A DNA stretch of 64,000 bases from Oopsacas minuta. Taxonomy: Eukaryota; Animalia; Porifera. The stretch lies in NCBI GenBank assembly GCA_024704765.1, contig JAKMXF010000335.1:62001-126000 (forward strand), written 5' to 3'. Positions 14,139 through 31,548 of this stretch are shown in pieces (within the stretch, counting starts at the first letter, position 1; every line of letters starts with the position of its first letter). The position numbers were made by a program, and so were the translations under genes. The notes below the pieces were generated by a model. It was not told the DNA's origin and did not search any database. It saw only the letters and a program-made list of their open reading frames with translations.

Positions 14139-14763
14139 ATTTGATAAGCCTATACTGCATGCTATTTGAGATTGTATTTCTATAATCGACAATTCAATTG
14201 TATAACATCTACTTGGTGTATGTACTGAATTGCTTTGTTTTTGATATTTTTCTTAGATTAGTATTTTGTACTTTCTACAGTTGTATACTTACTTGAATCA
14301 AAGGGAACACTTTATATGATAAGTTGAGATTATGTACCTCGTGGTGGAAGTAGGCAGTAGCATCTGAGCCTGGATGGGCTTGGTCGTATAAATTATTGTT
14401 TTCAAGTATATAACATATTTGATTGCACAATTTGAGAAATTTGGGGAGTAAGGTAGAAGGTACCTCTATATGTGCACTATAACCAAGGTTCCTTTAGAGT
14501 TTAAACACGACTTTTATTTAGAAAAGGGAAGATCAAGACGATGTTTCAACTAAATTGTTTAGTGAAACCGGCTTGATCATATAGTACAATTGTTTTTACT
14601 AAATGCAAACCATACTCTATAATATCTACGTATATAACAGCTTTTGAAGCTATAGCATACTGTAACATATTGTAATTGTAGAAGCTTAACATTTGTAAAA
14701 TAAATACAATAAATACAGTAGACTGAACATTTGTATAATTGTTTCTCGTTGATAAAGTACATA

Positions 14764-14952
14764 CAGTGAAACTTCGGCTCATAAATACGAACATGGTTAA
14801 AATACGAATTTCCGGATAAGACGAAAAATGTTTACACATAATCAGGTCCCTACAGTAGACATCCAATTGGTTTTGCTCCGGATAATAAGAACTCCGTATA
14901 AGATGAACACATTTGACCGTCCATTTGTATTCGTATTAACGAGGTTCCCCTG
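14764..14952. mobile_element. Tc1/mariner-type MITE
   Basis: TA flanks with imperfect TIR CAGTGAAACTTCG / CGAGGTTCCCCTG. Related CAGT...ACTG elements recur at 39177, 42569 and 55894. Confidence 0.7.
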
Positions 14953-14989
14953 TATATATAGTTGCTAAAACTATTATTGGAGGTACATT

Positions 14990-16103
14990 ATGCTAGTGTG
15001 TTGACTTAGATATAAGCACTAATCTGTGTATCTCTGCACTCTGCTTCCTGATTATTATCAACTCGAAAACATTGGCTTACTCAATCCAAAAATGTTCTAC
15101 TAACAAAGGAAATGACGTAATGAGTATTGAACCTTATTATGTACGAGAAATAGGAGGAGAACAATTAATTATTGATTTACCATGTCAAACCAAAGTAATT
15201 GATGACACAAGTGTTAAATGTAGATTTGAATCTTATCCTGAGAATATCGTTGATGGAGAAAGGCTGGGAGAGAATCAGATAGCTTGTGTTACACCTGTAC
15301 ACATCTATCTCGGTATTCATCAGGTATATGTGTCTGTTGATAATGGCAGCTCGTTTGATTATGTGGGTAGGTTCTATGCTGAGAGTGAGTACATTTTGGA
15401 GCCACATCTTGTTATTGAAAAGTTTGATTCAGCTATTTTACAGGATTTTACCACTGACATGGAAATAACATTATTATGGGACAAGAGTATGATCTCAAGT
15501 AAATTTCTAACTTTGAATTTAATGATGATTATTGATCCGTTCTCAGAATTGAAGAGTTGGGACGAGAGCACTGTTCTTATTGAAAAAGTAGAGAATAATG
15601 GGAAGATTTCTTTCAAGTTGTCAAAAGTCGTTACAAAAGAATTTCGCGATGGATTTGACCAAGTGCCAATAACAACTGGCACTTATCAACTAACTGATCC
15701 AAATTCAAACAAATACATAGCTGGACCTATAGCTATATTTACGTTTTCAAATATATCATTCGCGATATGCAAGCAGTTTTACCCCCTTCTGGAAAAAGAA
15801 CCGAAAGGACTCATACCGCCTACTTTGGAGCTTTTTCCATCCAGGTGTTGCTATATGCTACAGATCGGTACCTACTGAATACGGCTCAAGGGAACAATTT
15901 GTTATAATTATGACGGGACAATTAACGTAGGCACTGATGGATCTGGAACTTCAGATACATACAGCCCGGAAGTTTGCACCCCGCTGCATATTATCTATGA
16001 CATAATACCCTGGTTAGCTTGTTGTAAAGTAGCACAACGATGTGATTACTACGCTATGTACAGGCCAGGTGATGATTGTTGCCATTATAAACCTACTATG
16101 TAG
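14990..16103 (+). pseudogene. SUSD2-like TIG-AMOP paralog A with disrupted AMOP domain
   Basis: The signal-peptide-like frame lacks an in-frame ATG. Against the paralog at 17680-18843 there is a deletion of about 50 nt near 15820 (CPCNTTQA region lost) and a 1-nt loss near 15899. The AMOP remainder reads in shifted frames to TAG 16103. Confidence 0.8.
15106..15623. repeat. Left arm of a 518-bp near-identical inverted repeat
   Basis: Reverse complement of 18229-18746; one mismatch seen (TCA GAA vs TCA AAA, FSEL/FSKL). Confidence 0.92.
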
Positions 16104-16392
16104 CTATATGAAGGTTAATTGATATGTGTGTGTATGTGTTTAGTAGCTCATTTGACTAACATTTGAAGCGGAAGTATTCCATTTTGTTTGATTTATATAG
16201 TGTATAATGAAAACTAGATTTAGTAATTTACAACAAATGGTAAAAGTATCTCTAAAAGTAATAATTACATGCATAACATGAATAATTGGCAAATAACAAG
16301 ACTTTGAATTATACTAGTGTGTCCATTAATGGTACAAACTTAAAAGGGGGAGAAGAACATTAAAGTACATATCTTAAAGATAGATAGATTGG

Positions 16393-16818
16393 TCATTTTA
16401 CGTTAATATATCTTGTATTCTCAGGTATCATAGGTGAAGAGTCAGGGAATAACAAATTTGAAAGAATTTTTGAATGATGATCAATTTTTGGTTTGAAATC
16501 CTGCATTTGATCCTGAGGTTGAGCAAATTCACTAACACTCTGATAGATTGGTTGAGTGTTACCAACATTTTCGTGATTCAGGGGTTTTAATAGCACATTT
16601 CCTACCATTTTCAATTTATTATTCTTTCTAATGAAGCAAATTAGTAGAACGATTATGATACAAGTTTGTAATAACACTACTAAAGTAAATGGTATAGCGA
16701 TAATGATGAATATTTCATATGGTGTTTGTTGATCAACAGTCGTATTAGCTATTGAAATATTGAACCCCCCTTTGCAAGCAAAGTTTACCCAACCACTGGA
16801 TTTAAATTGGCCCCTCAT
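16393..16818 (-). CDS. Transmembrane helix and cytoplasmic tail of the SUSD2/EGF-like surface protein
   Basis: Hydrophobic IFIIIAIPFTLVVLLQTCIIIVLLICFI followed by RKNNK. It overlaps the EGF ORF in the +1 frame at GAGGGGCCAATTTAAA. Confidence 0.7.
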   Translation of the reverse strand: MRGQFKSSGWVNFACKGGFNISIANTTVDQQTPYEIFIIIAIPFTLVVLLQTCIIIVLLICFIRKNNKLKMVGNVLLKPLNHENVGNTQPIYQSVSEFAQPQDQMQDFKPKIDHHSKILSNLLFPDSSPMIPENTRYINVK

Positions 16819-17323
16819 CTACCAAATCACATTGTATTTCATCCTGACAGCTAGCCACGTTATACAATTGATACCCATACTCACAATAACACTGGAAAGA
16901 ACCTATGTAATTTATACAGCCAAGTTCACATCCTCCATTCATTTCCTGACATTCATTGATGTCAACACAATCGTATCCATTACTTGCTAGCTGATATCCT
17001 TCTTTACAAGTACAATGAAAAGATCCTTGTGTATTTTCACATTGATGTTGACAGTTGTTGAACCCAGAACATTCATCAATATCCTCGCATGTATCCGATT
17101 TGTTGATAGATTTGTAACCCATGTCACAACCACAAAAATATCCTTCTCTTATATCATGACATAGTTCATTGCTGAGACAAGTAATTTCATTATCAAAGCA
17201 TTGGTAAGATTGTGTTTGGGTACAATTGATATAGATACTTTTATCAGAAATAGTGTCACCATTTGGTTCTGAACAGTTCCCGCCGATAATCAAGATATCA
17301 TAACTCTCAAGGATAGACACGCA
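16802..17323 (-). CDS. Tandem EGF / calcium-binding EGF repeats (probable exon)
   Basis: DIDECS...CENTQGSFHCTCKEGY and DINECQ...CINYIGSFQCYCEYGY. A phase-0 acceptor aacatag|TGC lies at 17324/17323. Confidence 0.85.
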   Translation of the reverse strand, partial: CVSILESYDILIIGGNCSEPNGDTISDKSIYINCTQTQSYQCFDNEITCLSNELCHDIREGYFCGCDMGYKSINKSDTCEDIDECSGFNNCQHQCENTQGSFHCTCKEGYQLASNGYDCVDINECQEMNGGCELGCINYIGSFQCYCEYGYQLYNVASCQDEIQCDLVDEGPI

Positions 17324-17454
17324 CTATGTTAAGATTATTCTTATACATATTTTAATATTTAAGTTTTGATCGACAATAACCTAAATTATATACACTAAGG
17401 ACCAGGGATATCCGCTTTTACTCAGTCGATAATTGAAATTATTACCCACTTAGC

Positions 17455-17587
17455 CAGAGACGGACCCAGGATTGCTCAAAGGGAGGGGTGACTAAGCCTG
17501 AGCTTTGCGAGTGCGAGAACTTTAGGGTGTCTAGGTAATTGATATGGTATGTATTTTCAGCCCCCTTTGCCCCTAGATCCGCCCCTG
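17455..17587. mobile_element. GC-rich MITE (Harbinger-like termini)
   Basis: Imperfect TIR CAGAGACGGACCCAGG / CCTAGATCCGCCCCTG. Confidence 0.65.
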
Positions 17588-17679
17588 TTGGTCCGATAAA
17601 ACATTGTATATCCTTGTATGGTTAAATAAATAATTATCATAAACAAATCGTCAAAGAACAAGCAAATGAAGAGTTCTTT

Positions 17680-18843
17680 TCAAATCTCTTCTACTGGTTT
17701 GTATGTACTACAGTCATCAGAAGGTCTATACTTGTAATAGTAATCACATCTCTCGAACATCCTGCAGCACACGAACCATGGTAAAACGTCAAACACATAG
17801 TGCTTAATAGTGCTAACTTCCGGGCTGAATGTATCCGAAGTGCCCGCGCCATCTGACACTAGGTTAAGACTGCCATCAGAATTGTAACAACATTGTTCAC
17901 TTGAACCGTAAGCGCTGGGCACTGATCTAAAACATGAATCTACTCCTGGGTGGTAGAAAGGTTCTACAGGCGGTTCTTGATTGAAATATTTGTCAGTCTT
18001 TGCTTGAGTTGTATTGCATGGACAAGGGAGAATATCTACAGGCATTTGCTCCAAAATGGGTTCAAACCTGTCACAGACTGAATATTGTATTTCCGTAAAT
18101 GTAATCAATATAGTAGGGCCAGCTATATATACGTTTGTATTAGCGGCTGATAGTTTTAACACACCATAGGTTATGGGTATTGTCATAGAGCCAATAATAT
18201 CATTTGAAGCGACATCTGAAACGACATCTGACAACTTGAAAGAAATCTTCCCATTATTCTCTACTTTTTCAATAAGAACAGTGCTCTCGTCCCAACTCTT
18301 CAATTTTGAGAACGGATCAATAATCATCATTAAATTCAAAGTTAGAAATTTACTTGAGATCATACTCTTGTCCCATAATAATGTTATTTCCATGTCAGTA
18401 GTAAAATCCTGTAAAATAGCTGAATCAAACTTTTCAATAACAAGATGTGGCTCCAAAATGTACTCACTCTCAGCATAGAACCTACCCACATAATCAAACG
18501 AGCTGCCATTATCAACAGACACATATACCTGATGAATACCGAGATAGATGTGTACAGGTGTAACACAAGCTATCTGATTCTCTCCCAGCCTTTCTCCATC
18601 AACGATATTCTCAGGATAAGATTCAAATCTACATTTAACACTTGTGTCATCAATTACTTTGGTTTGACATGGTAAATCAATAATTAATTGTTCTCCTCCT
18701 ATTTCTCGTACATAATAAGGTTCAATACTCATTACGTCATTTCCTTCTGTGTCGGCGGAGCATTGATCAACTGAGAGAACATAAGTAGTGAAACTCAAAA
18801 TGACAAAACAACAGAATGTAGAATTGTAGATAGTGTTGTGCAT
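17680..18843 (-). CDS. SUSD2-like protein B: signal peptide, TIG/IPT and AMOP domains, no intact vWD domain
   Basis: IGGEQLII..PC and ACVTP (TIG); LPCPC, YHPGVDSCFRS, EQCCY, DVLPWFVCC, YYKYRPSDDC (AMOP). The stop falls where vWD normally begins. Confidence 0.85.
   Translation of the reverse strand: MHNTIYNSTFCCFVILSFTTYVLSVDQCSADTEGNDVMSIEPYYVREIGGEQLIIDLPCQTKVIDDTSVKCRFESYPENIVDGERLGENQIACVTPVHIYLGIHQVYVSVDNGSSFDYVGRFYAESEYILEPHLVIEKFDSAILQDFTTDMEITLLWDKSMISSKFLTLNLMMIIDPFSKLKSWDESTVLIEKVENNGKISFKLSDVVSDVASNDIIGSMTIPITYGVLKLSAANTNVYIAGPTILITFTEIQYSVCDRFEPILEQMPVDILPCPCNTTQAKTDKYFNQEPPVEPFYHPGVDSCFRSVPSAYGSSEQCCYNSDGSLNLVSDGAGTSDTFSPEVSTIKHYVFDVLPWFVCCRMFERCDYYYKYRPSDDCSTYKPVEEI
18229..18746. 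repeat. Right arm of the 518-bp inverted repeat
   Basis: Reverse complement of 15106-15623. Confidence 0.92.
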
Positions 18844-19772
18844 TTCTAAGAAAATAATAATCTTTGCAGATATTTTTGTGCAGACGGCCCAAAGAGTATA
18901 TGCAAGATACTTGTAAGTTGGAGAGAATAGCGAACAATTGAATATTCTGAATTAAATAAAAGTGTATTCTTCATTATAGGTGTAGTTGAATGGCTTTTAA
19001 GTATCATTATAATACAACCATAACATTAGTTGAAATATTAGATATAATTATTCTGGTAATATTAACTCAGTTGCTTTACATAAACTACAAATTCTTCATA
19101 AAACTAAACTACAGGTAAGTTGGCATTCATGCCTTGGTGTTTCCCAACACCTTATATTAAAAATAGAGATTTCCTTATTACCCTCGTCCTCCTCATTATA
19201 TTTGGACCTTTGTTGGTGCTCTGTAAGTATTTTTGAAAACAGGATTGCCTTTTGATAGAAGTAAACTCACTTAGCGAAATCGATTTTATCTAAAAGATCC
19301 GTCATTCAGACACTTGCCAACCTGAGTGAAGAATGCTATGGTACTGGCTTATACCTGCTTGGTGTTTTCGCGTCTAATTTTCCCTCATTCTATTTACAGA
19401 CGAACAAACACTATAATAAGTGTATTAATCAATTGATTCGAGTAAGATTTTGATAACTTTATTTGGGTTCGTTCAAGTGGAGAAAAATCGCTGTAACATG
19501 CATGAAAAAATTAAATTTGCTGCAACCCTTAACATACGCAGTGTAACAAATTTGCCCTCAAAATTCCAAAAAACAAGTGTAGTATCATGCATAGACAGCT
19601 CTAATATCCAAAATAAATCTGAATAAAATACGGATAATAGAATATAAAAATTATGAGAAATAGAATCTAAACGCAAATTCATAGTCTTGGCTTAGCAGCT
19701 ATCATGCAAACCTAACATCAGCAATCTATGGCAAGAGTAAAATTCTTAAACTCGCGAAAAAAACAAATATTA

Positions 19773-22562
19773 CTATTTCTGCATGAGACAGTATAAGACA
19801 ACATTATCCATGACCTCATCAATAACAGTCGAATATACTGAATTCTCCTTAGATACAAATCCTCCTTGATAGTTTCCAGGAGATAATGTCAGCATTGAAT
19901 CGTATATAACAAAACCAGGGGGTGAATTATCAAATGAAAACAAACTGAAATGACCACAAAACATAGAATCTCCTCTACAATCAACGCTTGACATATTTAT
20001 CAAAGATGATAGCTTCCAACCTTGAGGTAAAACCTTAGGAAATTGATCTGTATTCTTTATTATAACGTAATTAGCTGATGATAAATTTCGCGTAAAATCC
20101 TCCATCGATGAGTAACACAAACAAGGGTAATCACCTACTTTCGAGATTTCCTCCCTCACCAGTTGAATAAAATCACACGGACTACATTCTCTTGTAAATG
20201 AATAACCAATTGCTTTAAGAATATCCATCAATTTTTGATATTCCTCCTTCAATATTTTTCGCCATTTCAAACTACTATTGTCTTGATTAACCCATACATC
20301 TATAACTATTGACAATTGCGTGAGTAAAATAGAAGCATTCACATCAGATTTGAAGGTCAATAAACATTCTTTCAAGGGTCTGATTGAGATCATAAATGCG
20401 ATAGAAACATCCAACCAACAGGTGTAGTTGTTGCTATCAATAACAGCACCCCTCAATGCGAATTGTATACAAGGATCGCTAAGCGAGGGAGGAGATTTGG
20501 CTAATGGCATTCCTATAGATGTTTCTAGCATATTTCTGAACGGAAAATCCCTCAAGTTATATGAACAATTTTTATGAAATTTACTAGGTAAATCAATTTC
20601 GTTTGAACTCCCTCTCTTAGGTGATGCAGATTTGAATTCTTGTAGCAGTTTAGCAGATTGATAGCGTGTTAAAATACCAGGGTAATTACTTCTAATAGAT
20701 GTGAATTTGAATAATGAAGAATCTACTTTATGCGAGAAACCTCCAACTTGTTTCGCTTTACACTTCATTTGTGAGCCACTGGGAATTGGCAATGGTACGT
20801 CAACCTTTTTCATTGGAGCCTGTTGTACGGAGGATGTATCTCTCTCTTCTACAGCAACGAAACTATTGTATTTCGTAGCTAGAGAGTATGCTAATCCTAG
20901 CTCGATAACTTTCTTTTTCAGGTTCAGAACAAGATCAGGTTTTGCCGTCAAGCTCATTTCTTCCATTTCCTGTATTAGAGCTCTTGCAGCTAGCTTCTGT
21001 ATTATCTGATCAGATGATTTTGTATACATATTAGTAGCAGCTGATAGTTTCACTTTATATTCAACTTCCTTTTTGTTTGGGTCTATAGCACTTAGTGTAA
21101 CTTGAATGTTATCAAGATTTCCAGTGAAGTTAGGCTCGCTAAACGCATATACAATATATTGCTCAAGATTGAAGATAGGAGGTAAAGTACTAGGGGCTAT
21201 TTGGTTAATATCAACCCCAGTGAATTTTATCTGTGTATCTGTCATAGCTGGTTGTAAAGCAGCCTGTAGTTGGCTAGAAATAATACCTTTCATATCAGTG
21301 ACGTCACGGATAAACACAGCCTTACCTTTACCCAAACGCGCGATACCTTTCACTAGAGCTTCTGACACGCCTTGACCAATACCAAACGAGAATACTCGTG
21401 TAGAATTAGAATTTTGATGAACTGTGGTTTTCACTTCCTCGGTGTTACCTACTCCCCCGTCAGTTAATACGAAAATATTCCGTGGTGTACCAGGGATTAG
21501 TTTCTGAGCGTAAATATGTTTAAACGGAGGGAGAATGTCAGTACCGCCTAGGTTAGCCCCTATTTTTTTCGCGTGATCAATAGCTCTTTTGAGCCAGGAT
21601 TTGTCCGCTCGTTGTGATGATTTGAATAGAGATATAAAATCCGATCCAAATCCTATTATATTGAATAAAACAGAGGGTGGGAGAAGTTCGAGACATGTTT
21701 TCAGAGCTGCTCTCGCTTCTAAGATAGATTTCCCTCCCATGGAGCCTGAACGATCTACAACAAATATTATCTCAGTTGTTAGCTCTTTATATTGTATATT
21801 AGGGTAAGCTACTAGCATAAGGGCTACACTATTGTCTGGACGTTTCTCACTCCAAATCCTTGGTTTGTGAGGTTCCTTTAGGTATATTTCTAAGCTATAA
21901 CCTTTGTTCACTACATTCTGTGACCTTTTCTTCACAGATACTTCTACCTCATGAGGCGACGTATAGTTAACATTACAATCATGTGTGTTGCAATGAACTT
22001 TATCGATTTTACAATGCATTTGAGCTTTAACACGAGCATTGAATGTGTAAGTAACTTTTGAATGTTGAAAATCGGGTCCAGGCGTAGAAACTGAGCTATT
22101 AGGAGGTGTGTATGGCTTCATGATGGTAGTAGGAATGTTGAATAGTACATGAGGTGATTGTTCTTTCCCTGAGCCAGCGAGTTCACAAATATAAGAAATC
22201 TCAATTGTAACCTCAGTCTTAGGAGGTAGATTACCAACAGACATGGTGAACATATCATCTGAAGTTTGCTGTAAGAGATACGCACCGTGTCCAGATGAAA
22301 TAGAATCATCATAGATTTCTTTCGCTTCTTCATTTTCTTTGACTTCTGCACGGATAATTTTATCGTTTATTTTAGCTGTGAATCCTGTTATAGCAGAACT
22401 ATCTGTTATTGGGAAATGGTAGTTGGCTTCAATTGGTTCAGTAGATGAGTTGTTGTATGTTTGTGTTAGAGTAACAGACGCTGAGTAGTCAGTTATGTGG
22501 ATGTCAGCTGATATTGAAGTTAGAGGAACTTCAAATCCTTTATCAGTTTGAAGCATAGACAT
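19773..22562 (-). CDS. VWA5A-like VIT-vWA protein with a C-terminal USP-like cysteine protease domain, intronless, 929 aa
   Basis: VIT: YHFPITDSSAITGFTAKINDKIIRAEVKE, FTMSVGNLPP. vWA: IFVVDRSGSM, FNIIGFGS, FVLTDG, FSFGIG. C-terminus: SNNYTCWLD, CGHFS, VIYDS. Confidence 0.9.
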   Translation of the reverse strand: MSMLQTDKGFEVPLTSISADIHITDYSASVTLTQTYNNSSTEPIEANYHFPITDSSAITGFTAKINDKIIRAEVKENEEAKEIYDDSISSGHGAYLLQQTSDDMFTMSVGNLPPKTEVTIEISYICELAGSGKEQSPHVLFNIPTTIMKPYTPPNSSVSTPGPDFQHSKVTYTFNARVKAQMHCKIDKVHCNTHDCNVNYTSPHEVEVSVKKRSQNVVNKGYSLEIYLKEPHKPRIWSEKRPDNSVALMLVAYPNIQYKELTTEIIFVVDRSGSMGGKSILEARAALKTCLELLPPSVLFNIIGFGSDFISLFKSSQRADKSWLKRAIDHAKKIGANLGGTDILPPFKHIYAQKLIPGTPRNIFVLTDGGVGNTEEVKTTVHQNSNSTRVFSFGIGQGVSEALVKGIARLGKGKAVFIRDVTDMKGIISSQLQAALQPAMTDTQIKFTGVDINQIAPSTLPPIFNLEQYIVYAFSEPNFTGNLDNIQVTLSAIDPNKKEVEYKVKLSAATNMYTKSSDQIIQKLAARALIQEMEEMSLTAKPDLVLNLKKKVIELGLAYSLATKYNSFVAVEERDTSSVQQAPMKKVDVPLPIPSGSQMKCKAKQVGGFSHKVDSSLFKFTSIRSNYPGILTRYQSAKLLQEFKSASPKRGSSNEIDLPSKFHKNCSYNLRDFPFRNMLETSIGMPLAKSPPSLSDPCIQFALRGAVIDSNNYTCWLDVSIAFMISIRPLKECLLTFKSDVNASILLTQLSIVIDVWVNQDNSSLKWRKILKEEYQKLMDILKAIGYSFTRECSPCDFIQLVREEISKVGDYPCLCYSSMEDFTRNLSSANYVIIKNTDQFPKVLPQGWKLSSLINMSSVDCRGDSMFCGHFSLFSFDNSPPGFVIYDSMLTLSPGNYQGGFVSKENSVYSTVIDEVMDNVVLYCLMQK

Positions 22563-23121
22563 TACAATAGTATTATGATGTGCTAATAAATTCAGAGAAT
22601 ACTCTCGTTGAGATTAAAGTTAGAAGCAATTGGATATAGAATAAGAGAAGTAGGCACCAGAGTGCCCAGTGGTAGGAAAATTAAAAGATTAATAATTGTG
22701 AGTATACTTAGCAACCTCCTTGACAAATCTTAGAGTGGATCATGGACTTCAATTGGGACTAGCATATTTGAACTGAAACGCTTAAAGAATCTGCGAAAAA
22801 TGCAACTAATGAAGTTGGTACAAAGGTTGCGGATAAATTTCTGAATTTTGTAACCATAAAAAGTTCTGTGAACTTTCTTTCGAATATTGTACGTCTAATT
22901 CGCTTTGCCTACGTCCTGCAATTTTGTAGTTTTAGTTTTTCAGTTATGAATATATTAGACTAAATACTTTAGGACTTCCTGATTCACGGAACGGAACCGA
23001 GTTTTCCTTAGTAAAATTCGCTTGACATATATTTACCTTGAAAATCACAAAAAAGTGATAGAAACAGTTGTCAAGCATTTGTTATAAGATTTCATGTCGA
23101 TAGTAATTAGTATGTCAAATT

Positions 23122-23238
23122 CAGACCCGGCGGCAAGGATTTAGAAGTGGCCGGTTGGATACCCACTGTCCACAGAAACAGTACTTACTACTAACAGCAC
23201 CAAAAGTGGTCCAGTTAAAATCCGTGGCGCCGACCCTG
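23122..23238. mobile_element. Small GC-rich MITE
   Basis: Imperfect TIR CAGACCCGGCGGCAAGGATTT / AAATCCGTGGCGCCGACCCTG. Confidence 0.65.
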
Positions 23239-23305
23239 GTCAAATTGGAACCATTTGTACAATACGTATTACATTAATTCTGCTTAGAAACTTTACGGTA
23301 TAAAG

Positions 23306-23695
23306 GAGGATCAGCTATTCTAAAAAGTGGTAAAAAGGCAGCTACAGAAACAGCTAGAGTAATGACTAAAATGGAGGCAAAGCTATGGCAAAGCAAGTTG
23401 GAAAGGTTTGTGGCAAGCAAATTTGTTCCAAAATTATTATAAGGCCAATCAAATGAAGTAACACAAAAAAACAAAATGTTGTTCACCTTCACCCCATTTC
23501 AACATTTTGTAATGCTAAAATGGTAGGAGGAAGCCGCATGTGACATTTACAATTCTTCATCCGCTTTGTATAAGTTTAAAATACCCAGTATAGTATACTT
23601 AAATGTTACTATTATAATTTATATCCTTCAAGATGTTACATAAATATTACCTCCAACTGCAATAATTAAATTACGTAAAATTCGATTCCGTCGAA
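23306..23695 (+). pseudogene. Deleted inverted copy of the 27863-28800 unit (CDS fragment plus 3' flank)
   Basis: GGSAILKSGKKAAT vs GGLGILNSGTKAAT. Flank blocks ggccaatc(a/g)aatgaagta, ttgtaatgctaaaatggtag, atatccttcaaga and ttacctccaactgca match the reverse complement of 27863-28130. Confidence 0.85.
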
Positions 23696-23978
23696 ATGTT
23701 TATATATAATTCAGGATGAAATATTGACGGATCGATAACATTGCTACTATTGGGCCTGTTATTATATACTTTTGTTTCTTAGCCAAAAAAAGGTCAAAAA
23801 CCCCAAATATTGCATATCCACACTTCATAATATCTTATACGTAGAGGGGAAATACAAACGTATATCTATAAACAAAACAAAAATATAATCAATCTGATAA
23901 CATGACTATTGGCTAAGGACAATTGTAGCACACACACAAACACATCTAAACTACATACAATTTGTCTGTATTAGAATC

Positions 23979-26948
23979 CTACGGTTTCGGCTTAACATGC
24001 ACAGGTATCATTAAGCTTCCAGACATGTAGAATGTTAGAGCATCATAATCATAACCTCCTACCCAGAAATCTATGTACCATTCTTGATCTATCAGGAATT
24101 TAATACGAGATAGATTTTCGTTATCACTCGTGTTTTCAATCACCGAAAAGAGTTCCTCATTCGTTTTCAATGGTGCATTCAATGGTATATGATAAAAGCA
24201 TTGGAAAGGTGAATTCTTAAATTGATGACTAATCTCATACGTAACGTTTAAGTATCTAGTACATAGATAAGCAAGCTTATTCTTATCTTCAGGGCCAAGA
24301 TTTATCATCAAAGCTAGGGCAATAAGTTTCGCTGCGGGATAATGCTCTAGGAATGGTATTATTAATTTTGCTAATGGATCTGCTTGATACCTTGGAATGT
24401 CAAGAATTTCCTTAATATCCTTCATAATTGCATCAGATCGCAATTTATAAGTTGTATAGAAATCATCAAGACATTGCCCTGCACCACATTTCGAATTCAT
24501 AAGATTTGTATTTGCAAGTAATCCATTGATTGTATTGAATGTACTATCCCATTGGAGATATCCCCCGCTCTTAGCCGTACGAGAATCAGTTATATCAGAA
24601 TACACACCGAATGTTTTAGAATATTTTGTGCACGCTGAGTCGTAATCAACAACTTCGTTCTTGTCATTGTATATAAGATTAGCTCGTTTAACTTTGAAGC
24701 TTTTTGTTTCGAAACCAACATTTATTGGGTCTATACCCATTTGCCTGGATAATGCCTCATTCAGTTGTTGAAATTTTGTGTTATATTCAACGCCATGTAT
24801 TTTCTGATTATAGAAACAAAAATCGTGTAATTCAGGATTGCCAAAAAATTCTTCTTCTACAGCTTTTTGAACTTCAAGAAAATTGGTTTCACATAGCTGT
24901 GCATCGGTCATATAACAAGGAGGAATTAATTTCGCAGAAGTTATTTTAACTCCCTTATAGTTTTTCTCGGGGATGTAGTCTCTCTTGAATGGATTATTAC
25001 AATTCTTAAGAGTATTTTGGGTGTAAAATTCGTCCGTGAAATTTGGGTCTTCACTGTATTCAAACATGAATTGATGGCCAATAAACCCTCTCGTTTCATA
25101 GGTAGGATCATAATCAGTTGCCATACTATAAATAGCATATCCATCAAACTCAATATTTAGATAAAATTTGTCCTTAACTTCTTTCATAGGTCGCGGAGGC
25201 TTCGGCTTTGTTTTCGGTTTAGGCGGTTGAAGTGGTATTCCATTAGAAAATCCTTCATGGAGAATTTCAATACTTCGAACAACATGATCTAATGTATATT
25301 TCACTCGATTGACAATCGTTTTTCGTGTTTCATTATCAGTGATCCAAATTCCTACACATTTATCGAAGTCATTATAGCATTCCTCTTTAAATTTAGCACT
25401 GTCTATCTGAAGCTTTTCTAAAGCATTTACGACAGCCATAAATTTTTCAAATGGATGAGTAGTTAGATCTTTCGCTGACTTAGGTTGTGGCTTGGTTTGG
25501 AAAGGGAAGCCAGCTGTTTTATCCGGCTCCTCTTCGCTTAGCATAAAATAACTCAAAGTCTCGCCCAGTGGGAAGATCAATATGGACATTATTGGGTAGA
25601 ATCTAATGCTATTATATCTCGCAGTTATTTGATATAATTTATCTTCAGCTTCCGGAATTTTAATTATACTTCCCTCTAGGATCATTAACAGTATTTGATA
25701 TGAATCATTGGTCAAATCGACGAGTCTTTGTGTAATTGGATGATATGCATGGCCCACACCAGGTCTTGGGTGTGATGGACGAGAAACTATAGGCGCGAAA
25801 TTATCGTTTTTACTATCAGTTGATTCATTTAATGTGGAAAAATTCAAAATCATCATCAAAAATCTTGCCCAATGTGATGGTTCAATTGATTCTAATTTTA
25901 GAAATTCATCCTTACTAACTGGGAGATCTAGACCTGTAGATTTTTCAAATTCCGATATGAGAGCAATCAAAAGACCAATATCTGGAAGCAACTGTTCCAA
26001 ATTATCTAATTCGGATAAGATTTTATCGCAAAGTTCTACTATTTTTTGCTGTAGTTCATTATTAACATCTCCAGTTACCTTTTGAGATTTGACCCAATCA
26101 CGAGTTAGTGTAATAACATCTTTGAATAGAATTCCACCCATTTCACCTTCTCCTTGTGTTTCTATTATTCTTATATCATCATGAACTTTCTTAATAGTAG
26201 TATAGCGCTGAGTCATGTTTGTCATATGTTTATTAAGTTCAAATAAAGAATGGCCCAGTTTATGATGTACAACTGTGAATCCTTTATAAATAGCTTCGTA
26301 CAGCTGTGCAATGCTATAGTATTGGAAATGTTTACCCAGATTAGGAGGGATAATTGTCAAAGCGGGATGCTCCGAATGAGGATATGGTTCCTCATTCTTT
26401 GCAAACATGTATAAAGCTTTCAAATTTAGTCGAATTAAATCTGCGTCTTCTTCATCAACGCCTATTTTAGATGGAAATTGTACTTTTTGCAGATTTGGTA
26501 TACCGCCAATAGAAATCAACATATCAATGGCCATGCTCATATGTTGCATTTCTTGGATACAAATAAGCATCAGCTGGGTCTTGTATTCTCGCCTTATTTC
26601 CGAGTTATATGAATTTAAATCTTTGCCGATAGAACTGTTGACCTCGTCAGAATTGTTTATTATGCTGAAACATGCGAAAAGGTACTCAAACATGACCGTC
26701 ATTTCCAATTCTACTGCTATTTGCAATGCCGTTTTTAGTTGTTGCTTAGTTTTGATATTAGTCAAATCCTTTGCTTCTTGGCTTGTCAAAAGAAATCGTA
26801 CGGGACTTTTATTGCTTATTTCGTCAGAAACGCCGGTAACCAAATGAGAATGGCTGTCATTGACCTTGTCAAAAAGCTTTGAAATAAAAAATCCATCTTT
26901 TTCAAGTTTCGCCCTTAACGGTGAGCCTATAAAGTGTATTAGTGTCAT
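23979..26948 (-). CDS. Bacterial-type ferritin-like domain protein (PF12902 / VioB-RebD family domain) fused to an uncharacterised C-terminal domain, intronless, 989 aa
   Basis: LQIAVELEMTVMFEYLFACFSI, IQEMQHM..AIDMLISIGGIP, YSIAQLYEAI, IETQGEG, SHWARF, NDSYQILL, IFPLGETL..TAGFPF. A Pro/Lys linker precedes the second domain. Confidence 0.85.
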   Translation of the reverse strand: MTLIHFIGSPLRAKLEKDGFFISKLFDKVNDSHSHLVTGVSDEISNKSPVRFLLTSQEAKDLTNIKTKQQLKTALQIAVELEMTVMFEYLFACFSIINNSDEVNSSIGKDLNSYNSEIRREYKTQLMLICIQEMQHMSMAIDMLISIGGIPNLQKVQFPSKIGVDEEDADLIRLNLKALYMFAKNEEPYPHSEHPALTIIPPNLGKHFQYYSIAQLYEAIYKGFTVVHHKLGHSLFELNKHMTNMTQRYTTIKKVHDDIRIIETQGEGEMGGILFKDVITLTRDWVKSQKVTGDVNNELQQKIVELCDKILSELDNLEQLLPDIGLLIALISEFEKSTGLDLPVSKDEFLKLESIEPSHWARFLMMILNFSTLNESTDSKNDNFAPIVSRPSHPRPGVGHAYHPITQRLVDLTNDSYQILLMILEGSIIKIPEAEDKLYQITARYNSIRFYPIMSILIFPLGETLSYFMLSEEEPDKTAGFPFQTKPQPKSAKDLTTHPFEKFMAVVNALEKLQIDSAKFKEECYNDFDKCVGIWITDNETRKTIVNRVKYTLDHVVRSIEILHEGFSNGIPLQPPKPKTKPKPPRPMKEVKDKFYLNIEFDGYAIYSMATDYDPTYETRGFIGHQFMFEYSEDPNFTDEFYTQNTLKNCNNPFKRDYIPEKNYKGVKITSAKLIPPCYMTDAQLCETNFLEVQKAVEEEFFGNPELHDFCFYNQKIHGVEYNTKFQQLNEALSRQMGIDPINVGFETKSFKVKRANLIYNDKNEVVDYDSACTKYSKTFGVYSDITDSRTAKSGGYLQWDSTFNTINGLLANTNLMNSKCGAGQCLDDFYTTYKLRSDAIMKDIKEILDIPRYQADPLAKLIIPFLEHYPAAKLIALALMINLGPEDKNKLAYLCTRYLNVTYEISHQFKNSPFQCFYHIPLNAPLKTNEELFSVIENTSDNENLSRIKFLIDQEWYIDFWVGGYDYDALTFYMSGSLMIPVHVKPKP

Positions 26949-27017
26949 GGATATAGTTTCGATTTGTAATAAAGATACGTTGTAGTTTGTATATGGATTC
27001 TCTAATCTAATTGCGAC

Positions 27018-27188
27018 CAGTTACCAACCCCTTGTAACTGTTTCCTTGGATATTTTCCTTGAAATCCCTGAATTTTTAATTCTTTAGGCAAATAATATGA
27101 ATTTTCCCTCTTTTATGAGAAAAAATAGCCCGAAATAACCAATATTTCCCTGAATTTAGCAATTTCCCCCTGAATAGTAGCAAGTATG
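27018..27188. mobile_element. Decayed copy of the 3897-4091 MITE family
   Basis: Shared ttttatgagaaaaaat...aatattt interior; ends in GCAAGTATG. Confidence 0.65.
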
Positions 27189-27628
27189 CAATTATATATT
27201 ATTTTGTAATTTAGCAGTAACATAATTAACGAATGTGAAGTAACAGTTCTCATATTTTCAGGGTTGCCGTGGTTTCCACACATGATTTCTGTGGGAATTC
27301 CCATGAGGTTTTCCCATACAGATTTCGAAAGTTCTGATAAGCAGGGAATTACCTCAATGCTCAACCTCTTCGCACAAATATATTTTCGTTGGATAAAATT
27401 ATATGATAAACATAATCAATCACATAAATACAGCTGTTTACGGTGTGTATTAGTAAATTATAAATTTTACATATTTAATTAAAATATATCAAAAACTCAC
27501 CTAAAAATCCAGCCCCTTCACTTCCAGAGGCTGTTGCCATTCTTTAATTTCCTAGAAAAATATGTGAATAATATTTTAAGAATCCTATGGATATAGTATT
27601 GAGTATTCCTAAAACAATTTGTAGATAG

Positions 27629-27720
27629 TTAAGTTAAGAACTTACTTGATTTCTTTGCAATTTCAATCTATTCAAACGATAATTTTCACTTCCAATTACA
27701 CCCCGATTGATATTAGTGGA
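27629..27720. repeat. 92-bp direct repeat, copy 1
   Basis: Matches 29335-29426 with 3 mismatches. Confidence 0.92.
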
Positions 27721-28317
27721 TAAACTAAAGCAATTATTACTCTGAGCTTCTAAGCTTATTTCCGAATTTATACTCCGTCTCAATTTCCAGCATCTCTTAA
27801 TTAAGGGTCAAACTACGTACATGTTATTGTAATTTAATCCTTTGACTAATTATTTGGGTAATCGACTGAATCGATTGTATTAAGTAATGTAATGCAGTTG
27901 GAGGTAATATTTGTATTTATGTAAATTCTTGAAGGATATATATTCATAATTATATTTATGTATCTATTATATACTGGGTCTTTTCAATATTATGCAAAGC
28001 TGATAAAGAATTTGAATTGTTACATGCAACATGCGGCTGTCTGCTACCATTTTAGCATTACAAATGGTGATGTAGGAAGAGGGTGCACACCAACTTCGGT
28101 TTTTGCGATACTTCATTCGATTGGCCATATGATAATATAAAAATATTACTTAATGACAAATATTAACAAATTACAAATAGTTTCAGTAGGTTACCTAATA
28201 AGGAACAAACAAAGTATCAAAAGACGAATTAGTAATATTAATTAGCTAATTATTCTAAATAGTACATTAATTGAAAGAATATTCAGGATGTAGGAACTAG
28301 GAAGATGCTAACAGTAA

Positions 28318-28970
28318 CTAAGTAAGGTTTTTATCCACTACTATTTTTAATATCAATGTTGCTCCCTCTAATACTGTATAATATTTCACGACATTTTTAC
28401 CACTTTCTTTTACAGCTTTTTCCGCAACTTCTTTAAAAGCCTCTTTCATAGCCTCCTTGGTAGCTTCTTTCCCGGTATACTCAAAAATAAGTTTAATGAC
28501 ATCTTGCCCCACTTCTTCGGTAATAAACTTCAAATTATTGCCTTTCAAGGTCATCGCTAAAAAAATTCTAAGGAGGATATTTTTTACTCCAGGTTTAATT
28601 GCTGCTTCTGCTATTTTTTTAAACTCTCCAGTTGCAATTCCTTTAGCTATTTGTCTGCCATATTCCTTTCCAACTTTCTTTGCCATAATTTTGCCTCCTA
28701 CTTTTGCTGCTTGTTTAACTTCTTCTTTAGCTGTTTGTATGAGAGCATTTTTACCTGTGTAGCTGCCTTTGTACCACTATTTAGAATACCTAATCCTCCT
28801 AAACCGGCAAATACAAAAGCTGTGCCTACTACTGCTGAAGAATAATCCCCATTGTACGCGTTGTATAGAATTTCTCCACCATCCATTAATATTCCAGATC
28901 CTGGAATAAGGATACACACTCCTGTCTTGATGACTGTTTTCGCTACTATTCATTCCCAACTGGAGGTCAT
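28318..28970 (-). pseudogene. Gly/Ala/Lys-rich amphipathic helical protein with a pre-toxin-TG-like N-terminus; disrupted
   Basis: ATG 28970, in-frame TGA at codon 7 (28950-28952), and a 1-nt loss near 28755 joining the 73-aa and 122-aa ORFs (KAAT/GKNALIQTAKEEVKQAAKVGG). Confidence 0.65.
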
Positions 28971-29334
28971 TATAAGAGAGTTTCCAAAATGTACTTATTA
29001 TACTTGAGTGATTAGGCTATGTGTTAAATATTCTCCCTATTATGTCATGTAATATGCTAGAATAGTACAGACCAATACCCGTATCTATAGTTAATTAGTA
29101 GTCTATTAAAGTGTTCCCACTAAGCAATTCCGGCGATTTTTCACCGGAAAATATCAAACTTCAGAAGCTAAATTACCGGAAATTACAGGGCTATAGGAAG
29201 TTTATTACAAGGATTATTTAATTATTACAAGAGTGAAGTTAGCAGCGAGTAATAAGCACAACTTAACACATAATAATTCAGTCAATTTCCCATCAATTCA
29301 CTTGAAATTTGTTGAACGTTTTATTGGTTTATAA

Positions 29335-29426
29335 TTAAGTTAAGAACTTACTTGATTTCTTTGCAATTCCAATCTATTCAAACGATAATTTTCACTTCCA
29401 ATTACGCCCTGATTGATATTAGTGGA
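29335..29426. repeat. 92-bp direct repeat, copy 2
   Basis: Matches 27629-27720. Confidence 0.92.
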
Positions 29427-29780
29427 AAAATACAGCAGGTTACCTTCTCTGTATCAATATAATTACTTTCCTCTTCTACCTTCTCTTCCTTACAATTCAA
29501 CAGGAAGATAAGTGGAGGATGGTCAAATTCACGTCCAAACATTAGATGAAAGGGGCTATAGCTGGTCGCCCCTTTCAAATGGATATTGGCAGAAAGGCAC
29601 GCTGGTTGTAGTTTGCTAGGCCATTCAGTATCAACATCAGGTACAAATTGTGAGATTAACTTACATCCATTACCGTTTTAATTATTCAGTTAGAGTAAAC
29701 ATTGGAAGTAATTTCCGCATATATATCAAAGAAGTCATATAACAGTGGAAAGCAATTCTGACACGCACATGGCCAATACG
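29402..29780 (-). mobile_element. Gypsy/Ginger-type integrase (rve) relic
   Basis: The open frame 29677-29402 reads LISQFVPDVDTEWPSKLQPACLSANIHLKGATSYSPFHLMFGRE, matching the integrase C-terminal W...YN...T..SPF.L.FGR motif. Confidence 0.65.
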
Positions 29781-30576: not shown

Positions 30577-31548
30577 ATGGCAGAATTCTTCGGACCTCCT
30601 AATGAGAAACCCTGGGGTATAGTACTAGACAAGAATAACAACAGTGTTGTATGGCCTTCAGAACTTTCTGATGGTGATGACATGAGGCTAGAACTGTCAC
30701 AGGCTACGCTAGGAGCAGGCGCTAAGTCAGGAGAACGTAACATCGTAGAGCTCAAGATTATCTCAGAAGAGAATTTAGAGGAAACACAATCATTCCCGGT
30801 AGTCAGTCTAAGAGAAGGTTTATCTGAGCATACACTACTCAATCTAACTCTAAATCCGCCTGTTAGCTTCAAACTGGTAGCTGGATCAGGGCCTATATCT
30901 ATAATGGGAGTACAGCATAATGTAGGTGGTGATGAGACGAGTGAAAGTGATAGTGATGATGATGATGGAGATCAACTTGTAAAAGCAGAGAGCACTACTT
31001 CTAGTAAGAAACGGAAACGTGAGTCTCCGGTTAGTGAAGCGAAGAAATCAAAAGTTGAGGCTGAAAAGACCACTCCAGTTATTGCTAAGAAGGATAAGAT
31101 CGATACAAAACAGGACGCGAAAGATAAGATTATGAAAATGATGGGCGGTGAGGATTCAGGCGATGATTCTAACGATGAGATGGATGAGTTTACCCCCTCT
31201 GATTCAGATGATGATGACGAAGGGAAAAATGGACTTGATTTGGATGATTACAGTCTCTCAGATGAATCTGTAGAGAAAGTAACTAAACCTAGTCCAGTAA
31301 AGAAGGATAAAACGCAAAAAGCGACAAAACCCAAGCCAGCAGCTAAACAGGTAGACACGAAGCCACAAGCGAAAATCGGTAAAGTAAACCCTGAAGCAAT
31401 GGAAGCGATCAAAGCAAAAATTAGAGCTAATAAATCTCTCCCAAAAACTGAAGATAAATTCAAAAATTATATAAAATCTATGAGAGTTTCCGATGCAGGA
31501 CAGATATCAGAACTTTGGAAATTTGTCCAACAAATTAGAAAGCCCTAG
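30577..31548 (+). CDS. NPM1: Nucleophosmin-like protein (nucleoplasmin core, acidic tracts, NPM1 C-terminal three-helix domain), intronless
   Basis: Core LELSQATLGAGAK.ERNIVE...PPVSFKLVAGSGPISIMGVQ; D/E tracts; NLS KKRKR; C-terminal LPKTEDKFKNYIKSMRVSDAGQISELWKF. Confidence 0.88.
   Translation: MAEFFGPPNEKPWGIVLDKNNNSVVWPSELSDGDDMRLELSQATLGAGAKSGERNIVELKIISEENLEETQSFPVVSLREGLSEHTLLNLTLNPPVSFKLVAGSGPISIMGVQHNVGGDETSESDSDDDDGDQLVKAESTTSSKKRKRESPVSEAKKSKVEAEKTTPVIAKKDKIDTKQDAKDKIMKMMGGEDSGDDSNDEMDEFTPSDSDDDDEGKNGLDLDDYSLSDESVEKVTKPSPVKKDKTQKATKPKPAAKQVDTKPQAKIGKVNPEAMEAIKAKIRANKSLPKTEDKFKNYIKSMRVSDAGQISELWKFVQQIRKP

Follow-up and report, generated by a model that had tools for sequence, protein, structure and literature searches.

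A spliced and abundantly transcribed glass-sponge gene that probably derives from a fused prokaryotic two-gene module

The gene and its place in the sponge genome

The window analyzed here, a stretch of 64,000 nucleotides of Oopsacas minuta DNA, carries on its reverse strand a gene that is real, spliced, and abundantly transcribed in this sponge (Table 1). An uninterrupted open reading frame (ORF) of 989 amino acids (aa) at positions 23979 to 26948 had been reported in the original prediction, and we found both the intact frame and all six of the motifs quoted from its translation (AVELE..EYL, QEMQH, YSIAQLY, TQGEG, SHWARF, and AGFPF). The same prediction called the gene intronless, which is wrong: the ORF corresponds to the second of two coding exons, and the full gene, which encodes 995 aa and has the same structure in the NCBI model KAI6647921.1, begins with an exon of only 13 codons, separated from the second by a 574-nt intron with GT..AG ends. 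The earlier ORF start, at 26948, falls 22 nt within this intron. Exon 1 agrees with the N terminus of KAI6647921.1, and N termini akin to it occur in a Vazella pourtalesii transcript (P0024) and in an exon predicted in a second sponge assembly (L001).

Table 1. Features of the gene, its encoded modules, and two neighboring genes (window coordinates; residues follow the 989-aa ORF)
Feature	Position	Strand	ORF residues	Remarks
Transcribed 5' leader	27541..27800	-		From X4 depth; reaches at least 27800
Coding exon 1	27501..27540	-		ATG, 13 codons, and first base of a Gly codon (MATASGSEGAGFL, then G); read from the sequence
Spliceosomal intron	26927..27500	-		574 nt, GT..AG, phase 1
Coding exon 2	23979..26926	-		Includes stop codon, 23979-23981
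Module A, first half	26127..26768	-	61-274	PF12902 ferritin-like helices; E82, Y89, E133-x-x-H136, E186, Y217, E267
Helical insert	25884..26126	-	275-355	Conserved among sponges; profile-match coordinates skip 275-355
Module A, second half	25344..25883	-	356-535	H359, M454, P460, E463, G480
Pro/Lys-rich linker	25173..25241	-	~570-592	Variable, gappy columns in alignment A1
Module B	23982..25166	-	595-989	Beta-rich core and helical insert
3' untranslated region	23880..23978	-		~100 nt; from fall in X4 depth
MIPEP-type peptidase M3	12531-14138			Animal neighbor gene, same window
NPM1	30577-31548			Animal neighbor gene, same window

The spliced joint, from 26925 to 27500 (cut +1, with ends CT..AC on the forward strand), occurs in four contigs, all of them from run X4. 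Depth in this run is 12,000 to 26,000 over the exons and ~8 to 16 over the intron (an exon/intron ratio of ~1000), and in the DNA runs X1 to X3 it is flat across the gene. X4 is not recorded as RNA; we infer this from its depth pattern and the spliced joint and refer to the run as RNA-like. Transcription extends beyond the coding sequence at both ends: X4 depth in the 5' leader is 2626 at 27548 to 27688 and 720 at 27689 to 27800, compared with 8 to 16 in the intron, and at the 3' end it falls from 4373 (23882 to 24022) to 175 (23741 to 23881) and then to 20 (23600 to 23740). No canonical AATAAA was seen in the ~100-nt 3' untranslated region. Expression of the family elsewhere is documented by Trinity transcripts from Vazella.

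In its composition the gene resembles its host, as had been predicted. Its GC content is 0.352, its GC3 (0.296) lies inside the range of the neighboring genes (0.285 to 0.332), and its relative synonymous codon usage (RSCU) correlates with that of those genes at 0.78, within a control range of 0.60 to 0.81. The eukaryotic genes said to lie on both sides are present, namely, MIPEP-type peptidase M3 and NPM1, and the window also contains AMOP, VIT-VWA, and D-glutamate cyclase genes. The physical link to the flanking animal genes, on which the prediction had been made to depend, is seen in DNA contigs, including an 8364-nt contig from X1 that spans the gene and continues leftward across VIT-VWA. 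The host MITEs described beside the gene did not hold up: none bounded by inverted repeats was found next to it, and all that turned up were a dispersed direct repeat of 108 nt and, within the intron, points at which contigs branch.

A PF12902 domain in a long uninterrupted ORF appears bacterial at first sight, as if the sponge assembly were contaminated with bacterial sequence or misassembled. However, the GT..AG intron is spliced, GC content (35%) and codon usage are host-like, DNA contigs extend from the gene into neighboring genes, the same gene order is found in an independent assembly of a second species, and relatives of the gene sit on Mb-sized contigs with animal genes. Contamination or misassembly is already refuted by these observations, and we assign it next to no probability.

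Two modules and their relationship to VioB

The encoded protein comprises two modules, A and B. The ferritin-like domain claimed for module A is clearly detected, with residues 75 to 270 matching PF12902 over profile positions 1 to 200 of 221 (E = 6e-21; 75.8 bits, against a gathering cutoff of 22.3). Its two halves together correspond to the whole prokaryotic A protein and to VioB positions 598 to 991. The helical insert between them has no counterpart in the ~420-aa prokaryotic A proteins, and in this region of model m96fe4d839060 helices are predicted at 221 to 296. Modeled on its own (pLDDT, 86.0; pTM, 0.81), module A is predicted to adopt a ferritin-like helical-bundle fold resembling that of the sole solved relative, CC_0557 of Caulobacter vibrioides (PDB 3hl1), which is its best structural match (Z = 22.0; rmsd, 2.9 Å; 251 of 282 residues aligned; model residues 10 to 430) and stands above all other ferritin-like folds (Z = 12 to 14 for bacterioferritin, Dps, and Mn-catalase). 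The likeness to 3hl1 extends to the sequence profile (E = 1.7e-09) and to common QEMxH, GEG, and H-x-x-RF motifs, but 3hl1 is a stand-alone protein of 317 residues without module B, and it comes from structural genomics, with no function assigned to it.

Module B has as its prokaryotic homolog a ~290-aa protein whose gene lies immediately downstream of that for A, and it belongs to no Pfam or NCBIfam family; the original prediction had not identified it as the product of a distinct bacterial gene. Its model (pLDDT, 86.3; pTM, 0.87) appears to have no clear solved fold: the best Foldseek match in the PDB had an E value of 0.1, the highest Z among 48,161 chains compared with VIA-align was 5.6 and concerned nothing more than a helical hairpin, and the ESM Atlas returned a TM by query of ≤0.27 when searched by shape and no usable match when searched by features. 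A profile search of PDB sequences with A plus B and with B alone likewise gave nothing significant.

The original prediction placed the gene in the VioB/RebD family, an assignment that is correct for the domain and fails for the enzyme. VioB, RebD, and StaD carry a heme cofactor and couple two indole-3-pyruvate imines. Like them, the sponge protein falls in PF12902, and its module A is the counterpart of the last 400 residues of VioB; bacterial A proteins match the VioB equivalog model TIGR04492 at E values of 1e-17 to 1e-25 over positions 598 to 991. In VioB, the ferritin-like module is C-terminal and follows an unrelated part of 600 residues, whereas in the sponge it is N-terminal, beginning at residue ~60 with no equivalent of that preceding region, and is followed by module B. 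Given the homology of module A to VioB and the UniRef name of the protein (“iminophenyl-pyruvate dimer synthase domain-containing”), one could propose a working VioB/RebD/StaD-type enzyme that supports bisindole (violacein- or indolocarbazole-like) chemistry in the sponge. Yet the sponge protein scores 20.9 bits against TIGR04492, for which the cutoff is 1250, and does so over 43 residues only (61 to 103, aligned to model positions 596 to 638). For module B, no similarity to VioB or to any family was detected, neither it nor its bacterial homologs matching TIGR04492 at E ≤ 0.01, and the window showed no VioA/C/D/E-type partners. The TIGR04492 tests thus appear largely to refute this reading, which we regard as extremely improbable. 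The automatic label calls for caution, as it implies violacein-type chemistry for which these tests give no support.

Sponge relatives, prokaryotic counterparts, and origin

Full-length relatives of the gene, 13 in number and 40 to 57% identical, were found only in sponge-type assemblies and in the Vazella transcriptome, where they form two transcript groups. The order VIT-VWA, gene, NPM1, D-glutamate cyclase is kept in L001, in which the neighboring genes are 81% and 64% identical to those of Oopsacas. L001 has the phase-1 intron at the same position, and two further sponge loci (L002 and L003) have acceptor sites. The dN/dS ratio is 0.08 between Oopsacas and L001, a comparison in which dS is saturated, and 0.34 for a tandem pair in L002; ~160 columns are invariant across the whole length of the sponge-family alignment (A1). 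Judged from these comparisons, the gene is duplicated within glass sponges and appears to be under purifying selection. Its assignment to glass sponges only is based on Oopsacas, Vazella, synteny, and a neighbor gene whose sole named relative is that of Oopsacas, and applies to databases that contain few sponge genomes. Given the conserved intron, paralogues, synteny, purifying selection, and abundant transcripts, the gene clearly matters to these animals.

Prokaryotes encode A (~420 aa, with PF12902) followed directly by B (~290 aa), often with touching stop and start codons. We scored 44 loci in which the two genes lie side by side; a minority of bacteria have a single fused protein. GTDB genomes contain >588 loci, distributed among Actinomycetota, Acidobacteriota, Bacteroidota, Planctomycetota, Myxococcota, Pseudomonadota, Chloroflexota, and Verrucomicrobiota and, in the archaea, Nitrososphaerota. 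Both halves of A and both ends of B are matched by the sponge-family profile in fused as well as split prokaryotic forms, and the B profile detects fused bacterial proteins at E values of 1e-63 to 1e-98. Sponge and prokaryotic modules are homologous over their whole length and have the same order, and they share invariant residues in A (Y89, E133, M134, H136, E186, Y217, H359, M454, and P460) and in B (G603, D614, G621, G624, N730, P741, W957, D967, D969, and G977), but their identity is just 17 to 22%. The fused forms, of 680 to 1190 aa, include P0038 (locus L004, close to a Chitinophagaceae MAG) and P0142 (locus L006). Only the sponge gene has the insert at 275 to 355, the Pro/Lys linker, the 5' exon, and the intron, and only it is an animal nuclear gene. 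Approximately 10 proteins from Solirubrobacterales and other Actinomycetota (900 to 1100 aa) combine module A with a different C terminus and lack B.

When 1.84 billion representatives were searched exhaustively by profile, only four matches fell below 1e-30, all in the sponge family; the next real matches were bacterial, at 1e-26 and weaker, and no A-B relative was found in other eukaryotes. A beetle sequence (P0037; E = 1.8e-27) was rejected as a relative, being a 27-fold tandem repeat with an inflated score, the single units of which reach ~8e-5. When a word-based protein search was run for a second time, using an alignment that mixed sponge and bacterial sequences, it again returned the sponge family and nothing else. 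Broad vertical eukaryotic orthologs, which the original prediction had named as contrary evidence, were thus not found in these searches, and the relatives outside sponges are prokaryotic and remote.

We built two trees, both of them unrooted “quick” searches in which the tool warned of long-branch joins, leaving out the ~10 A-only Actinomycetota proteins and four duplicate loci. In both, sponges are monophyletic (support, 100) and fall in the part of the tree that holds the main clade of fused bacterial proteins, apart from a 48-row, mostly split clade (support, 93 and then 96). The sponge stem measures 2.7 to 2.9 substitutions per site. The most likely source of the sponge gene is a bacterial gene in which the two modules were already fused, and the best explanation is that it was acquired by transfer before the sampled glass-sponge lineages diverged. 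A prokaryotic two-gene module would have given rise to a fused bacterial gene, and this would have reached the glass-sponge ancestor, after which the 5' exon and spliceosomal intron would have been gained, host codon usage adopted, and the gene duplicated and held under purifying selection.

Alternatively, the gene could be an old eukaryotic or animal one that descended vertically and disappeared everywhere but in glass sponges, its prokaryotic likeness then reflecting common ancestry. Some fungi do have PF12902 domains (PMC4417212), the intron is an old and conserved feature, and the sponge clade, with its very long stem, is not nested with strong support in any named bacterial lineage. Against such descent, the exhaustive search produced no A-B relative in any other eukaryote, its one eukaryotic match being a repeat artifact; the ancestral-looking state is an operon feature, the touching stop and start codons, spread over eight bacterial phyla and one archaeal phylum; and very many independent losses would be needed. 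We consider vertical descent very improbable. The domesticated horizontal transfer originally proposed is well supported by intron, splicing, codon usage, synteny, purifying selection, and distribution, and a prokaryote-derived fused gene kept in glass sponges, with module A working through the putative oxidative metal site discussed below, is overall the account that we find probable.

Sponges lie near the base of the animal tree. Because the sponge carries, splices, and transcribes a gene that in prokaryotes is usually two neighbors, we see in it an old, kept transfer into an early-branching animal. To our knowledge, well-documented functional gene transfers from prokaryotes to animals are few, and this one, in which two operon genes became one animal gene, is unusually well supported, with an intron, paralogues, synteny, purifying selection, and abundant transcripts. 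Other prokaryote-to-sponge transfers kept in the host similarly involve bacterial-type genes that reside on animal chromosomes, have host-like composition, are common to related glass sponges, and are expressed; what differs here is the fusion of two operon genes, the gained intron, and a family without known activity. Our search of the literature on PF12902, the accessions of the gene, and horizontal transfer in glass sponges found no description of this gene.

Conserved residues and possible function

E82, Y89, E133, H136, E186, Y217, and H359 are 100% conserved across sponges and prokaryotes, and E267 and E463 are nearly invariant. Two altered ligands had been predicted. The change from EH to EM is borne out and uniform: at position 83, 27 of the 29 prokaryotic relatives have His, and all 11 sponge proteins have Met or Leu; the change from EE to QE is no deviation, since Gln is the commonest residue in prokaryotes as well (19/29). 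Prokaryotes hardly vary at H83, R131, and R459, yet no sponge copy has kept any of these three residues. Considering these replacements together with the very long stem, the sponge protein probably has a different substrate or a changed metal site relative to its bacterial ancestors. The second half of module A lacks the canonical ExxH, so a classical diiron site is no more than a possibility.

We know of no cofactor, activity, or substrate for any member with the A-B architecture. Most likely, module A provides a putative four-helix-bundle metal site (E82, E133-x-x-H136, E186, H359, and E463) that would activate oxygen or peroxide and so oxidize a small molecule or a peptide side chain, with module B as the possible obligatory partner or substrate-binding domain of A. 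The diiron/heme oxidative or defense-chemistry enzyme of the original prediction is, likewise, something that may be inferred from sequence. PADLOC defense models gave no match for the sponge protein, for split A and B, or for a stand-alone B (P0114); a weak match of the fused P0038 to the JetA model (E = 0.0004) was taken as chance.

The Glu/His set and the oxidase-rich neighborhoods of the bacterial genes would fit an oxidative metalloenzyme. The neighbors include tyrosinase (L004 and L006), BBE/FAD oxidase (11 of 83 loci), a lanthipeptide synthetase, and a B12-radical SAM enzyme, within neighborhoods that are heterogeneous and in which the commonest neighbor is a regulator, not an enzyme. 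In the sponges, searches of the window and of the flanks of L001 to L003 revealed neither a tyrosinase nor a BBE gene. A bacterial tyrosinase and the sponge protein gave a short BLAST alignment (E = 8e-4) that the profile did not support and that we put down to chance. A bolder proposal is that the sponge itself, and not a symbiont, uses the module as a tailoring enzyme in host natural-product chemistry and that A-B constitutes a new metalloenzyme family whose partner fold is unseen among solved structures; we think this improbable. With a family that lacks a known activity and a module B that lacks a recognizable fold, the abundant sponge protein is a good entry point to the role of the A-B module.

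Without H83, R131, and R459, the protein may have lost its catalysis rather than changed it. With the same origin, the protein might now be an abundant structural, scaffold, or metal-binding/storage protein in the tissue of glass sponges, in keeping with the replacement of these residues in all sponge copies, the very long sponge stem branch, the very high transcript depth in X4, and the faster evolution of the gene compared with its neighbors (56% versus 64 to 81% identity). Its abundant expression raised the question of identity with a known glass-sponge silica protein. Hexaxilin is a 359-aa MBL-fold protein, perisilin is a Cys-rich, CAP-like protein of 265 aa, and glassin is His rich with His-Asp-rich repeats (PMC10772126); we rejected all three, as size, domains, and fold differ, and the supplements of that study mention neither of the Vazella transcript identifiers and none of the accessions of the Oopsacas gene and protein. 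Not being a known silica protein argues against a nonenzymatic role, as does the retention of E82, E133, H136, E186, H359, Y89, and Y217 across sponge proteins only 40 to 58% identical. We judge such a role unlikely, though it deserves some weight. An oxidative enzyme remains our preferred reading. The invariant acidic and Gly motifs of module B are also retained across the sponges and, together with the Glu/His/Tyr set, form the pattern expected of an active site that has been kept.

Structure, transcription and genomic setting of the sponge gene

The target gene contains an uninterrupted ORF of 989 aa, read from the window at 23979..26948 on the minus strand (residue numbers below follow it), and its translation carries every motif listed in the original prediction. 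The protein is KAI6647921.1 (LOD99_8382) of the glass sponge Oopsacas minuta, and the NCBI gene model of 995 aa differs from the ORF solely at its N-terminus. A first coding exon is separated from the rest by an intron, and the ATG at 26948, previously taken as the start, falls within that intron. By eye, no signal peptide or membrane segment was obvious. Hexaxilin, perisilin and glassin were considered as identities for the protein and rejected.

Four public sequencing runs from one sample (X1 to X4) were mapped onto window positions 23600-27800. Three have a flat depth of 60-150 across this interval and are DNA. In X4, summed depth is 12,000-26,000 on exon 2, 2,600-6,400 on exon 1 plus leader (27407-27688), 720 at 27689-27800, 8-16 across the intron and 20 past the 3′ end. 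Furthermore, four contigs, from X4 only, contain the joint 26925->27500, which reads CT..AC on the plus strand and thus GT..AG on the strand of the gene. From the depth pattern and the joint we infer that X4 is RNA, which the run record does not say; with X4 so read, the exon-versus-intron depth and the spliced joint show that the gene is transcribed and spliced and its transcripts abundant, although contig-summed depth is not an expression rank and does not order this gene against others.

An 8364-nt DNA contig from X1 spans 23600-27123 and then extends about 4.8 kb leftward across the neighboring VIT-VWA ORF. Besides the genes in the table, the window holds an MFS transporter, a peptidase-M3 (MIPEP-type) exon and an AMOP-domain ORF. 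GC3 is 0.296 for the target gene and 0.285-0.332 for its neighbors, and its RSCU correlates with that of the pooled neighbors at an r of 0.78, within the control range of 0.60-0.81.

Coordinates of the target gene and neighboring genes in the window
Feature	Position	Strand	Remark
VIT-VWA protein, 929 aa	19773-22562	minus	one uninterrupted ORF
Exon 2	26926 to stop at 23979	minus	read from sequence
Intron, GT..AG	27500..26927	minus	574 nt, phase 1; read from sequence
Coding exon 1	27540..27501	minus	MATASGSEGAGFL + one base; read from sequence
NPM1	30577-31548		
D-glutamate cyclase-like protein	62879-63964		

Several other features of the window were recorded. Among NCBIfam models, the VIT-VWA gene best matches “marine proteobacterial sortase target protein”, at 281 bits and so under the cut-off of 551. 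A 108-nt direct repeat (93% identity) lies at 27617-27724, inside the target gene's transcribed 5′ leader, and at 29323-29430, upstream of a small ORF (28318-28686, minus strand). Contigs from the DNA runs branch at 27724 and, within the intron, at 27090-27126; these are therefore dispersed genomic repeats. Two 530-nt segments, 99% complementary and 2.6 kb apart (15106-15635 and 18217-18746), form an inverted duplication overlapping an ORF at 15072-15878 (plus strand) and the AMOP-domain ORF at 17680-18843 (minus strand). Neither strand has an ORF of at least 130 aa between 31548 and 60977, the ~29 kb from NPM1 to the next long ORF, which may hold intron-rich genes or repeats.

A prokaryotic two-gene module in fused form

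Pfam scanning assigned residues 75-270 of the target protein to PF12902 (Ferritin-like) at 75.8 bits (cut-off 22.3; E 6e-21) and gave no further match in the remaining 700 residues. The sole NCBIfam match was the VioB equivalog, over 43 residues and at 20.9 bits against a cut-off of 1250. When 1.84 billion cluster representatives were searched exhaustively with the profile, 750 matched at E <= 1e-3, and the four below 1e-30 all belong to the sponge family. The next match, a 6458-aa beetle protein (P0037, Brassicogethes aeneus), was rejected because its summed score is inflated by repetition: it consists of 27 tandem 229-aa units, each weakly matching the first ferritin-like helix (52 profile positions, ~8e-5). 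The matches after it are bacterial, for the contigs inspected.

Domain re-scoring resolved three matched blocks: positions 61-274, which are PF12902; 360-530, which co-occur with the first block in ~420-aa proteins; and 595-680 plus 946-984, carried both by 680-1190-aa proteins and by stand-alone ones of ~300 aa. Scanning GTDB with a single genome for each species gave >588 loci. In 80 fetched loci subjected to ORF calling, the N-terminal ferritin-like part (module A, ~340-520 aa) and the C-terminal part (module B, ~260-320 aa) are usually adjacent genes, A first and B within a few bases. Forty-four loci were scored as split pairs, and true fusions with B number four loci plus twelve representatives. 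Split pairs occur in Actinomycetota, Acidobacteriota, Bacteroidota, Planctomycetota, Myxococcota, Pseudomonadota, Chloroflexota, Verrucomicrobiota and Vulcanimicrobiota, and also in archaea (Nitrososphaerota). Since A and B are adjacent prokaryotic genes and a bacterial A protein aligns with positions 598-991 of the VioB model (E 1e-17 to 1e-25), the sponge protein is a fusion of this two-gene module; a permuted VioB was rejected. Module B matched no NCBIfam or Pfam family. A third family architecture was seen in loci of Solirubrobacterales and other Actinomycetota (L065, L067, L070, L072, L074-L076, L082 and L085), whose 1040-1100-aa proteins begin with module A and carry a different C-terminal part in place of module B.

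The structure model of module A (residues 55-560; pLDDT 86.0, pTM 0.81) has as its top solved match CC_0557 (3hl1), a ferritin-like protein without assigned function (Z 22.0, rmsd 2.9 A, 251 residues aligned; Foldseek probability 1.00; sequence-profile E 1.7e-09), whereas bacterioferritins, Dps and Mn-catalases score far lower (Z 12-14). The module B model (residues 587-989; pLDDT 86.3, pTM 0.87) has a beta-rich core with a long helical insert and no convincing match in the PDB or ESM Atlas.

Sponge relatives and likely origin

A word-based protein search found 13 further full-length relatives at 40-57% identity (950-1034 aa; one of 762 aa). Two, both transcript groups, come from the glass sponge Vazella pourtalesii (EukProt EP00800); others are encoded on contigs of 0.1-2 Mb. 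On one such 1.69-Mb contig (locus L001), the order VIT-VWA, NHL, target gene, NPM1, D-Glu cyclase is that of the window, but the target gene alone (10001-13027, against 23979-26948 in the window) is inverted relative to its neighbors, indicating a local inversion of one gene. Identity between the two loci is 81% for VIT-VWA, 64% for NPM1 and 56% for the target gene, which thus evolves faster than these neighbors. In L001, a TTTTAG acceptor at the Oopsacas codon position is preceded, 765 nt upstream, by a candidate first exon (MATSTGGKGPHGLT, donor GTAAGG) closely similar to the N-terminus of Vazella transcript P0024. Acceptor sites occur at the matching place in L002 and L003, and the intron is thus old. 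L003 is surrounded by eukaryotic transposon genes. In L002, two copies lie 3.5 kb apart, adjoining a prolyl 3-hydroxylase gene whose sole named relative is from Oopsacas (58%). These copies are convergent (10001-12985, plus; 16519-19530, minus), with a Transposase_1 fragment between them and ~98% protein identity (dN 0.017, dS 0.049), and are a recent duplication in that sponge.

Across 12 aligned sponge sequences, mean column identity is 56%, with ~160 invariant columns over the entire length. dN/dS is 0.08 between Oopsacas and L001, where dS is saturated; for the young tandem pair it is 0.34.

Two unrooted trees (72 and 71 rows, ~720 columns; LG+C20 PMSF, quick search), with split pairs entered as concatenated A and B, recovered a monophyletic sponge clade (support 100), whose stem measures 2.7-2.9 substitutions per site. 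Both place it on the same side as the main fused-bacterial clade; all 44 split pairs fall in a 48-row clade divided from that side with support of 93 in the first tree and 96 in the second. The direct sister of the sponges differs (protein P0146, then P0058), and the tree tool gave a long-branch attraction warning for both. These trees, affected by long branches, point to a fused bacterial gene as the likely source and to no particular donor lineage. Within the sponges, the window gene is orthologous to Vazella DN4314 and the L001 gene, and the split between the two Vazella paralogues predates the Oopsacas-Vazella divergence.

That sponges acquire genes by transfer is already known; what is new here is the A-B module in an animal, fused, intron-bearing and abundantly transcribed. 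We found no description of the gene in the literature on the family, gene and protein accessions, glass-sponge horizontal transfer or the Oopsacas genome paper, a coverage that is incomplete and leaves absence unproven.

Conserved residues and putative function

Invariant in both sponges and prokaryotes are Y89, L90, S95, E133, M134, H136, E186, Y217, G268, H359, M454 and P460 in module A, and G603, D614, G621, G624, N730, P741, W957, D967, D969 and G977 in module B; E82, E267 and E463 are nearly so. The Glu/His set kept on the ferritin-like bundle points to a putative metal site, and the fact that A and B are tightly coupled in prokaryotes suggests an enzyme of two parts. Oxygen-using or tailoring enzymes abound in the bacterial neighborhoods of A-B genes, among them a tyrosinase immediately upstream of two fused forms that belong to different subclades and a BBE/FAD oxidase immediately downstream at 11 of 83 loci. 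From these three lines we favor, by inference, a putative oxidative metalloenzyme that would act on a small molecule or peptide. The main rival, a non-catalytic role of the sponge protein, seems to us unlikely.

Three positions are replaced in the sponges: H83 (His in 27 of 29 prokaryotes) is Met or Leu in every sponge copy, R459 (Arg in 26 of 29) is Tyr or Phe in every copy, and R131 (Arg in 26 of 29) is mostly Ile or Val, His in one and Arg in none. The EE-to-QE change once read as a further deviation is not one, since most of the prokaryotes carry Gln there. Both the three replacements and the length of the stem suggest that the specificity of the proposed enzyme may have been altered after transfer.

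Two bacterial neighborhoods hint at peptide natural-product clusters: beside the fused gene for P0047 (L089, 8592-11827) lie a class III/IV (RamC/LanC-type) lanthipeptide synthetase and two small ORFs, and upstream of that for P0046 (L090, 2453-4771) lies a B12-radical SAM enzyme gene, itself preceded by a 79-aa ORF. The commonest neighbor is a cyclase/AAA_16-type regulator (27 of 83 loci).
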